This document shows positions 21,357 to 24,878 of a stretch of 64,000 nucleotides of DNA, piece by piece. This DNA is from Stylophora pistillata. Taxonomy: Eukaryota. A program made the translations under genes and the position numbers. The notes under the pieces were generated by a model. That model was not told where the DNA came from. It did no database searches and saw only the letters and a program-made list of their open reading frames with translations. The stretch is taken from contig NW_019217794.1 of assembly GCF_002571385.2 (NCBI RefSeq), positions 652,239-716,238 on the forward strand, given 5' to 3'. Numbering within the stretch: position 1 is the first letter of the stretch; the number at the start of each line of letters is the position of its first letter.

Positions 21357-24300
21357 TCAAACATTGCTTTCTTTTAAGTTGACAAGTCCCTCAGTGATTT
21401 CTGTTAAGGATTTATCGCCACTCATAGCTGGATCGTCAGCCAGTGTCTTTGCCAGACACTTAGTCACAGCTTCCATTTGTTTCATAACAAGGTGCATGGT
21501 GCGTTCTGTAGTGTCCAACCTCTTCTGCAACTCTGTCAGATGTTTCTTTGCTGTAGAATAATGAATTCATGCTCAAAAAATTAACAGTTGGTTAATAATG
21601 AAAAAAAAAAAAAAAAGTTTGAGAGAAAAAATTTTCTTCATTCTTTAATCCTCTTCTCCCCTTCACCCACCTCTAGTGGGAAAAGAAGAGCTTAGATTAC
21701 GATCAGCAACAAAATCTACCATATTTTCCAGTTCTGATACACCCTTGCTGGCAGAACTACAAGAAATTTTGTCCAGGATCACTAATCACAGTTGCCAATA
21801 GCAGGGCATTACTGGAGTTAACACAATATACTTAGGCAGTTTCCATACCTGGCTCTACTCCACTTGCCTTACTCTGAATCGCACGCAATTGCTGCAGACG
21901 ATGGCTTACTCCATTACACACAGTTAGCAGGTCTTCCAGTTGGGTTTCAGTATTAATTGGCTTTTTTACTTCCTCAAGAGCCACAACATGTGGGCAATCA
22001 GGGTAGAACTCTTTGTGACCCTCCAAGGGATCATCACCTGGCTTCCATTTTTTAAGGGTACCCTGACACTTAAAGCATTTTACAATATCGTCTATCCCAG
22101 TAAACACAAAGCCAGCTCTTGCTAGTTCAAAAACATTAACTGAACTTGTTGAAGGCCAATACAAGTATGTCCGTACACGGTTTCCAACAATTGACAGGTC
22201 TGCTGGTTTGCAGGCCGGTTTGATGTCAAGGCTTTCAGGTTTTGGGACATGGTTTGTGGTATGCACTTGACGTGCTGAAAGGGACAGAACTTTTCTCAGA
22301 CATTTACCAAAAGTATTAAAAGTCAACCATCTTTACAGGTTGTGTTTCTGACAAGAAATGAGAATTTTTTTAAAGAGTAACATTTTTTTTTTGATTACTC
22401 AGGTGTTCAATTTTAGATTAAGATGAGACATTAATTAATACTTTGGCCAGGAGACCAAATTAACATAAATGGCAGAAATGCAATGGGAGATTAGGAGAAA
22501 ATTACAAGCAGGTTAAAAGCATGGATTTTAAATGACAGTTTTAATGTTACAGTTGATTACAGGAAAGCCATACATTCACCCTGCCACTCAAACAGCTAAA
22601 ATCCCACCACAAGTAACAAGTCTGATCTACAAGCCCAAGTATAACATTCAATGTTTCCTAGTGTGTGGATGTATACATGTGACCTATGGCACTAAACATG
22701 CAAGGCTCCTTAATTTAACTGTGAGCATTGTTTAACAGTTAGTATTAGTTGTGGCTGCTAATGAATTCAAAGATTGTAAAATAAATTATTGGTCAAGAGT
22801 GCATGCATTAAGAAATTCATATAAACAGGTATTAATTTAAATGTTATAAACGCCCTCAAGTATGAAGCATATTTTACAAAAAGTTGGAAGTGTATACCAC
22901 AAACCATGAGGTTCTGAATAACTTGACACGTTTGATTGGAAGTTCTCAAGAAATGAACGCACAAAAAACATTTCAAGAGACTCAAAGATAATTTCCAATC
23001 AAAGGATATCATATACTCAGCATTTTTTCGGATACAGCAAGTAGAAGAATAGTGCATTTTTGACGTAATAATTTGCATCCAACTGGACAAACCTGCTAAC
23101 TGATACAAGGGATTTATCATGTTTACGAACAGCAGGGGGAATGCAGGCTTTACATGACAGAATCATATTTAACAATGAAAAATAGTTATTTGTACACAAG
23201 TCATAATGATAAAATAATGTTTGCAAAACAGCATTATCAAACATTTTTAATGTTATCTACAAAACAGTTATCAACTAAGGAACCATTTGGTATTGGTAGC
23301 CAAATACCTTTTGTGTTTGCCGGTTAGAAAAGACTCCTCACAGAGTTGATTAAATTTTCACAAACCCTACCAGGTTTTACAGGTGGGGTTTTAGCATCAC
23401 ATACATGTTTTGTTAAAGAAGTCTGATCTAAGGATTAAACAACTTTTCAGAAGTAAGAGAAAGTAATAAAAGGGTAACTGATTTGCAATTATTAACTAAG
23501 ACACAAAAGTGAACAAAAAAAAGAAAATTGCATAATTACCTTCCTCCTCAGTCATAAAGGTTTGGTCTTTTTTCTTCTGTTCCTCTGCAAGTTTCTTTAG
23601 TCTACGTCTCCTCTGTCACAAAAAAGGTAATTAAGCCCAAGTCAGTTCTAGAAGAAAGTCTGGCACAGGAATCTGATTATATCACTTAACTCATAATGTG
23701 TACAAATTTGAGAAAATACTAACTGAAGAAAAAACATACAAAATGGTGTGATGTAATTGGCTTCTTTTCAAATCTTTCATCACTCTAATATGCAAGTTTA
23801 ATAGAACTTTTCAAATCCAGAAGATTGAATATTAACAAAATTTGAGTGAACTTTGTCCTAACTAAAATTTAAACAATTCCCAAATCCATAGGACGTATCC
23901 AGGTACCTGTCCCTGAATTCTAAAACACAAACACTGGTAGTAATCCAAGGTGTGGTCTGAGCTTCAAATTTAAAGTTTGTGCTTAATAATTTACCAAAGG
24001 TTTACTCAAGTATAATTGAGAAATGAGAGGATCTCAAAAATAACAAGACTTATTTAATTCATCTTACGTTTGTCTTGAAATTTCAAAGCTAACGTTTCAA
24101 TTCGAGAGGTAAATTAATTCTTAAAATAAACATATTCCAAAACAGCATTTTTCCCCACAGCTTACCCCACCCCAGCACATCTGCCCTAAGAAAAACTTAA
24201 AATTATCAATCACCGGTAAGAAATTTTAACCATACAACTCTCAAGGCCGACTACTTTGAGAATATCTTCTTAAAAGACAGGGCAAAGTCTTACAAAATAT

Positions 24301-24878
24301 TTCCGTCAGGAAAACTAACTGACAACTTAGTTGAGAAAATTATGTTAATTAACACTAAAAACAATCTTCAACAACGCTATTAGTAGGTGCTCGTCTAGCC
24401 AATGCCGCATAAAAACATTCCGATTAACACAATTAGGAATTCCATCTTAAGAGAAAATTATTAACACTAAAAAATAGTCCACATTGCGCTTTCCTTCTTC
24501 TTAGAAATTGAAGATTTACCGCTGTTTTCTGCGTTTCAATTTGGGTTATTAAATATTCGGTTCGATAGAAATGTTGTTATAAAGCTGGTGCTATCAAACT
24601 GTAACAGTAAAGAGTAAAAGAACGTATAATATTTTAAAAATGATACTTACCCTAAATAGTTGAACGGCGAAAAATATAGCAAATCCAGGCAGCACATATT
24701 TCCATGGGATATGATAGCCAAAAATGTGGAAATCTTTGATGAATTTTACAACATTCGCGGCTATGTCTGCATGAGGTTTTACATGTTTCCCGTATACCGC
24801 TTTGATCTTCGGATAAAACACTGCTAAAACAACACCTATTACAGCTAAGACGGCTAGCTTAGTTTTCAGCTTTGCCAT
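21357..24878 (-). CDS. RIC-3-like two-TM / coiled-coil protein with an internal BIR (IAP) domain, 4 exons, 306 aa
   Basis: Exons 24878-24651, 23612-23540, 22274-21849 and 21550-21357 are in frame. TM1 ends in FYPKI, TM2 is YVLPGFAIFFAVQLF. BIR has R..TY..WP, LARAGF and C-x2-C-x16-H-x6-C. Coiled coil is LTELQKRLDTTERTMHLVMKQM. The BIR call is strong; the RIC-3 call rests on recalled motifs. Confidence 0.8.

Follow-up and report, generated by a model that had tools for sequence, protein, structure and literature searches.

An anthozoan gene for a predicted membrane protein whose BIR domain lies on an alternatively used cassette exon

Introduction

Can a protein be held in the membrane by N-terminal hydrophobic segments and carry a BIR domain that splicing either inserts or leaves out? 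This question is raised by a gene on the minus strand of a 64,000-nucleotide stretch of Stylophora pistillata DNA (contig NW_019217794.1), which we call the window. Cell death and innate signalling are centrally controlled by BIR proteins, of which the canonical members are soluble or attached to membranes just peripherally. An earlier note on this DNA had described the gene as a fusion between a RIC-3-like chaperone and a BIR domain brought in by exon shuffling from an inhibitor-of-apoptosis protein (IAP). RIC-3 is an endoplasmic reticulum (ER) chaperone of nicotinic and 5-HT3 receptors. We show here that the BIR exon is a real cassette exon, alternatively used and under purifying selection. 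The explanation that we favour, and consider fairly probable, is a membrane-tethered anthozoan protein in which splicing switches the BIR, with docking by the tail and recruitment by the BIR at the membrane. The gene is, as far as sequence searches have reached, seen only in Anthozoa.

Results

The BIR exon is alternatively spliced

The coding model read from the sequence has four exons, with the coding sequence (CDS) running from 24878 to 21357. To follow its transcription, we used the stranded raw reads of one RNA sequencing run (X24) and the contigs of three other runs, over positions 20400-25900. In X24, exon 1 is joined to exon 2 by 62 reads (23612>24651). Exon 3, which carries the BIR, is joined to exon 2 by 14 reads (22274>23540) and to exon 4 by 16 reads (21550>21849), and 55 reads join exon 2 directly to exon 4 (21550>23540). 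Each of these joints reads CT..AC on the plus strand, that is, GT..AG on the minus strand, and the first mate always lies on the plus strand. No joint other than the four predicted ones was seen in the X24 reads or in the contigs of the other runs over this interval. Contigs of runs X9 and X1, which come from other studies, each hold the skip joint and one inclusion joint, and inclusion of the BIR exon was seen in three independent studies.

Thus, both inclusion junctions and the skip junction are present in RNA, and the reading frame is kept either way. The BIR exon is a real, alternatively used cassette exon. Since the reads join exon 3 to exons 2 and 4, it belongs to this transcript and is not a separate unit. 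The product is 306 amino acids (aa) long with exon 3 and 164 aa without it, with Ala at both junction codons. Inclusion is about 21% by read counts and about 29% by the word depth of contigs, which is a rough measure. The skipped 164-aa form is the major one, and the BIR-bearing 306-aa form is minor. The introns that flank the cassette exon are no more conserved than those around the constitutive exons.

The start of the transcript is also visible. It is marked by molecule ends at 24925/24927, and an in-frame stop codon at 24914-24912 precedes the ATG at 24878. Positions 25000-25551 have no RNA coverage, which leaves a gap upstream of the gene; therefore, the transcript does not arise by read-through from the neighbouring gene on that side. 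The earlier note had predicted this order of exons (two transmembrane segments, the basic stop RRRRR, BIR, coiled coil), a 426-nucleotide (nt) cassette between phase-1 introns whose skipping leaves 164 aa, and no separate transcription of the BIR exon. The exons, phases and splice sites read from the sequence agree with it, as do the four RNA joints. The three junctions that it had named for checking (23540>22274, 21849>21550 and 23540>21550) were all found in stranded RNA, so that the transmembrane exons are joined to the BIR exon. The motifs FYPKI, RRRRR and LTELQKRLDTTERTM were all found in the translated exons. The gene is present as a single copy in this genome.

The cassette exon encodes a complete BIR domain

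The Pfam BIR model (PF00653) matches exon 3 with 73.6 bits (E 1.9e-20, cut-off 22.9). All four zinc ligands, which had already been read from the DNA as C-x2-C-x16-H-x6-C, lie within this one exon, and none of them changes in the six coral loci or in the four annotated orthologues. Among solved structures, NAIP BIR3, cIAP1 BIR3 and XIAP BIR3/BIR2 score best against this BIR (E 5e-18 to 1e-14 per single domain). No RING, UBC, CARD or NACHT effector domain was matched by Pfam in any exon or orthologue.

We also looked at the peptide groove. The domain was aligned by eye, not by a tool, to the established numbering of XIAP BIR3; W310, E314, Q319 and W323 are the residues that we take to be groove positions. 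In this alignment all orthologues keep a Trp at W310, an Asp at E314 and a Phe or Tyr at W323. Such a groove could accommodate an exposed N-terminal peptide, but the residues do not prove that it does.

The closest other BIR in this genome is 42% identical and belongs to a canonical IAP, an intronless 902-aa open reading frame (ORF) on the minus strand of contig C9 of the assembly G000 (L019 1507-4215). This protein has two BIR domains, a BIRC2/3-like UBA domain and a C-terminal RING. Because the nearest BIR lies in such a gene, an IAP origin of the exon is plausible, and the cassette could plausibly be an old capture of an IAP-type BIR. The proposal of exon shuffling from an IAP therefore stands as a plausible one.

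The split gene and its BIR are conserved in corals, sea anemones and an octocoral

A search with the exon-1 ORF gave a 164-aa protein (P0001) that shares 99% identity with the skipped form and is assembled on 13 contigs of public sequencing runs (Logan). The same search gave orthologues of equal length from Porites harrisoni and, under the title 'isoform X2', from Acropora digitifera; two Acropora isoforms are already in NCBI. An exhaustive phmmer search with P0001 returned a 313-aa protein (P0034) in two matched stretches. With P0034 as the query, we obtained four annotated proteins that are full-length and contain the BIR: from Actinia tenebrosa ('E3 ubiquitin-protein ligase XIAP-like' in the database), Nematostella vectensis ('predicted protein'), Montipora foliosa ('uncharacterized') and the octocoral Dendronephthya gigantea ('uncharacterized'). 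When these four are aligned, neither the zinc ligands nor the tail core QKRLDTTERTMHLVMKQMEAVTKCLA show any variation. Since full-length BIR forms occur in both hexacorals and an octocoral, the architecture is older than their split.

Five other loci from coral genomes (L004, L005, L006, L008 and L009) have exon 1, exon 2, the BIR exon and exon 4 in the same order, strand and phases, and the Pfam table lists a BIR ORF for each locus. AG/GT borders around exons 2 and 3 and the AG acceptor before exon 4 are present in 5/5 loci (recomputed in four). Exon 2 is 87-100% identical to that of the window. The BIR exon measures 420, 432, 429, 420 and 435 nt, respectively. All these lengths are multiples of 3; therefore, every insertion or deletion kept the exon symmetric.

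For the BIR exon, the ratio of nonsynonymous to synonymous substitution rates (dN/dS; Nei-Gojobori, six sequences) is about 0.15. Within this exon, the BIR core has a mean dN of 0.07 and the N-terminal linker a dN/dS of 0.58; dN for exon 4 is 0.013. The BIR exon is under purifying selection. Thus, two further expectations of the earlier note, the same architecture in other cnidarians and a constrained BIR exon, held.

The tail is extremely well conserved. Residues 1-40 of exon 4 (21429..21548) are nearly invariant across Anthozoa, and a tail core of about 35 residues is invariant from stony corals to the octocoral. A profile search of a large protein set returned solely anthozoan relatives and fragments, which does not amount to showing that other groups lack the gene. 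On a short metagenome contig (L011 415-717; P0056 and its cluster), we observed an exon-4-like stretch, RRLENVEKTTHLVMKQLEAVTKCM, that is about 48% identical to the coral tail. The contig also carries a tandem repeat of about 100 nt. P0056 may be a relative beyond the sampled anthozoans; it could be neither placed taxonomically nor extended.

Hydrophobic segments, predicted topology and tail

Two N-terminal hydrophobic segments were found by Kyte-Doolittle analysis in 5/5 orthologues tested. In the window protein they are separated by a basic linker of 37 residues (net charge +4) with 3 Pro. The last Arg of exon 1 runs on into exon 2 to form RRRRR, after which a charged stretch follows, and the net charge over the 20 residues following segment 2 is +7. 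This polybasic stretch should put the BIR and the tail in the cytosol. The translation of exon 4 begins with KKHLTELQKRLDTTERTMHLVMKQMEAVTKCLAKTL and continues to the stop codon; in the best heptad register, 9 hydrophobic residues of the tail occupy a/d positions. The coordinates of all these features are collected in Table 1.

Table 1. Features of the gene, in coordinates of the window
Feature	Position	Strand	Structure	Content
Exon 1	24651..24927	minus	Short 5' untranslated region (UTR) and CDS 24878..24651 (76 codons, 76 aa); ends in phase 0, GT donor	Both hydrophobic segments
Hydrophobic segment 1	24813..24857	minus	Residues ~8-22; Kyte-Doolittle maximum 2.9 over 15 residues	Predicted membrane anchor or signal-anchor
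Hydrophobic segment 2	24654..24698	minus	Residues ~61-75; Kyte-Doolittle maximum 1.9	Followed by RRRRR
Exon 2	23612..23540	minus	73 nt, AG/GT, ends in phase 1	Polybasic, charged juxtamembrane stretch RRRRLKKLAEEQKKKDQTFMTEEE
Exon 3 (cassette exon)	22274..21849	minus	426 nt, phase 1 on both sides, AG/GT	Linker, BIR and helical segment
BIR domain core	21985..22179	minus	Exon-3 residues 32-96	Pfam PF00653
Exon 4, coding part	21550..21357	minus	AG acceptor, TGA stop; 63 aa and stop	Predicted coiled-coil tail
3' UTR	20400..21356	minus	At least 957 nt, continuing past the interval covered; continuous X24 depth of 89-170 in one orientation	Single X1 and X9 contigs span 20400-21550

Surroundings of the gene

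A long poly-A/T run (21589-21631), at which reads break, lies in the short intron that separates exon 4 from the BIR exon. In the region just upstream of the gene (25552-25900), both strands are deeply covered by RNA, with a word depth of up to 786 in X9; variant letters are frequent there, and numerous loose ends fall at 25576/25577. This looks like a multi-copy or repeated expressed element outside the gene.

Further upstream, at 27007-28777 on the minus strand, there are ORFs with KOW-like and Pro/Gly/Thr-rich repeats that resemble the C-terminal part of SPT5. In the related coral loci, ORFs matching Pfam KOW6/KOW7_SPT5 stand at the matching upstream position; such SPT5 exons were recorded for all of these loci except L005. 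Since SPT5-type ORFs lie upstream both in the window and in the related loci, the synteny of SPT5 followed by this gene is conserved. On the other side, a 167-aa ORF on the plus strand (18555-19058) looks like an exon of the glycoside hydrolase family 18/chitobiase type, and L009 has Glyco_hydro_18 ORFs downstream of the orthologue, on the opposite strand. This neighbour seems to be conserved too.

Discussion

A proposed splice switch for a membrane-tethered BIR

Alternative use of one symmetric exon decides whether the protein carries a linker, the BIR and an additional predicted helix ahead of its tail, following the juxtamembrane stretch. We propose the following mechanism. The invariant tail would dock or oligomerise the protein at a conserved membrane partner or complex. 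In the minor isoform, the BIR could recruit proteins with an exposed IAP-binding N-terminus, such as caspases or Smac-like antagonists. The major isoform, which lacks the BIR, would compete for and occupy the same membrane site. The splice ratio would then set the dose of membrane-tethered BIR.

Several observations weigh against this explanation. The position equivalent to Q319 is Gly, Ala or Ser in our by-eye alignment, a change that may alter or abolish the binding of peptides with an IAP-binding motif. The topology is predicted from hydropathy and charge only. The AlphaFold2 model built from a four-sequence alignment is poor (mean pLDDT 52, a measure of model confidence). It has a helix at 243-281 at low pLDDT, and it gives no structural support to the groove geometry or to the coiled coil. 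Finally, an octocoral-like contig (L013 2739-4874) holds homologues of exon 1 and exon 4 about 1.7 kb apart, and between them there is no intact BIR exon, just a Gly-rich low-complexity match. The BIR may be dispensable in some lineages, perhaps having been lost in that of L013. Two further contigs, L014 and L015, resemble it in this, and the tail on these octocoral-like contigs is 87% identical to that of Dendronephthya.

Is the backbone RIC-3?

The alternative that survives best is that the backbone is an anthozoan RIC-3 orthologue and that the spliced BIR couples receptor assembly to caspase/IAP-binding-peptide signalling. In RIC-3, two hydrophobic segments, separated by a proline-rich linker, precede a cytosolic coiled coil, and there is little homology between species (PMC10933150). 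The two hydrophobic segments and the putative cytosolic coiled coil of the coral protein fit this layout, and with such poor conservation, weak profile scores are to be expected.

We ran whole-protein profile tests on five database proteins (P0001, P0058, P0034, P0057 and P0059) and searched the exons of the window singly. The curated gathering threshold of the Pfam RIC3 model (PF15361) is 28.9 bits. For the coral skip forms, RIC3 is the best or second-best non-BIR family (E 0.008-0.018), with scores of 16.1, 17.1 and 15.9 bits, which are under this threshold. In the Actinia protein, RIC3 is second to BIR alone (22.9 bits, E 1.3e-4), and its match falls into two stretches that are split exactly at the BIR. 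The match is collinear and nearly gapless: residues 65-121 lie on profile positions 86-143 (57 on 58), running from hydrophobic segment 2 as far as the coiled coil, which indicates RIC-3-like spacing.

Against this stands the fact that every score is below 28.9 bits. The Nematostella protein reaches 12.1 bits and the Montipora protein 8.3, and the Pfam profile gave no RIC3 match in the Dendronephthya protein or in any single exon of the window. Profile positions 1-85, which cover the first hydrophobic segment and the linker, are unmatched. The linker is basic and not proline-rich, and the tail is short and invariant, whereas that of RIC-3 is long and disordered. The orthologues share one conserved motif, so their matches are not independent and count as one observation. 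Exhaustive phmmer, two word-indexed searches and a profile search of the large protein set brought up no RIC-3 protein. In the protein atlas, the best feature score among all clusters was 0.77, with nothing usable among the named clusters, and sequence searches of the PDB, for which the skip form and its profile served as queries, gave chance-level matches alone. A six-frame search of the whole genome with PF15361 also returned nothing, yet its controls were equally silent, and hence it is uninformative.

Thus, the RIC-3 identity claimed earlier has the collinear PF15361 match and the two hydrophobic segments in its favour; the scores below the threshold and the linker, which is not proline-rich, speak against it. 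The backbone may be related to RIC-3, though very distantly, a relationship that these scores do not establish. We hold true homology to RIC-3 to be possible, though on the doubtful side. The orthologue reading as a whole, with its coupling to peptide signalling, appears unlikely to us. The full reading, in which a chaperone is coupled to peptide signalling by its BIR, is less likely than RIC-3 homology itself. That the gene is a long-missed cnidarian RIC-3 orthologue whose spliced BIR links the biogenesis of Cys-loop receptors in the ER to caspase/IAP-antagonist signalling is, in our estimate, improbable. Any tie to Cys-loop receptor assembly is speculation.

Other explanations

Inclusion of the BIR exon could be splicing noise, or the exon could be a functionless, decaying relic. 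The BIR form is indeed minor (14-16 versus 55 junction reads), and one octocoral-like contig lacks an intact BIR exon. On the other hand, the open frame, zinc ligands, splice sites and multiple-of-3 length are kept in six stony-coral genomes, the substitution rates given above (dN/dS 0.15, BIR-core dN 0.07) are low, the same insertion is found in sea anemones and an octocoral, and inclusion recurs in three independent studies. We therefore consider noise or decay very improbable. Another possibility is that the model fuses two genes, with the BIR exon belonging to a separate one inside an intron. It is suggested solely by the position of exon 3 inside a long intron, and we count it as refuted, since reads tie exon 3 to exons 2 and 4 on the same strand, with no other joints, starts or ends inside it.

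Significance

If our explanation is true, the gene offers a distinct way to place and dose IAP-type peptide recognition at a membrane. Control of cell death is relevant to coral bleaching, and Nematostella carries the orthologue, which makes the system experimentally accessible. If the backbone is RIC-3, this chaperone family would have originated before the cnidarian-bilaterian split, and if the receptor coupling is true as well, it would be a link from receptor biogenesis to caspase/IAP-antagonist signalling that is unknown in any animal.

The earlier note knew of no described RIC-3/BIR fusion. Our literature search, which was partly too general, found no papers that describe such a fusion, a cnidarian RIC-3 or a transmembrane BIR protein, and no paper on a BIR cassette of this kind was found in the literature searched. 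The claim of novelty holds to that extent; the gene models themselves are already public as 'uncharacterized' or 'XIAP-like'. What sets this BIR protein apart is its unusual predicted anchor and its splice switch.

Comparison with known systems

With RIC-3, the coral protein shares two N-terminal hydrophobic segments followed by a putative coiled coil that is predicted to be cytosolic, as well as the sub-threshold collinear profile match. Both have alternative isoforms that change the cytosolic part, and in RIC-3 there are isoforms that lack the coiled coil (PMC10933150). They differ in the linker, which is not proline-rich in the coral protein, and in the tail, which is short and invariant there and long, disordered and poorly conserved in RIC-3. 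No RIC-3 with a BIR is reported in the literature searched.

A second point of comparison is survivin (BIRC5). In survivin a single BIR stands directly before a long C-terminal helix for coiled-coil docking. The coral protein likewise has a single BIR followed by a predicted helix, a small size, no RING, and splice isoforms that alter the BIR. Survivin is soluble, without hydrophobic segments, and the helix sequences are unrelated; outside the BIR, we found no specific similarity between the two.

The closest likeness of the domain itself is to the BIRs of IAPs. Like BIR3 of NAIP, cIAP1 and XIAP, the coral BIR has the full BIR signature with its four zinc ligands, and in our by-eye alignment it keeps a Trp, an acidic and an aromatic residue in the groove. 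In contrast to canonical IAPs, the coral protein has a single BIR and no RING, UBA, CARD, UBC or NACHT. Its BIR is carried on a predicted membrane anchor, and the whole domain is optional by means of the cassette exon.

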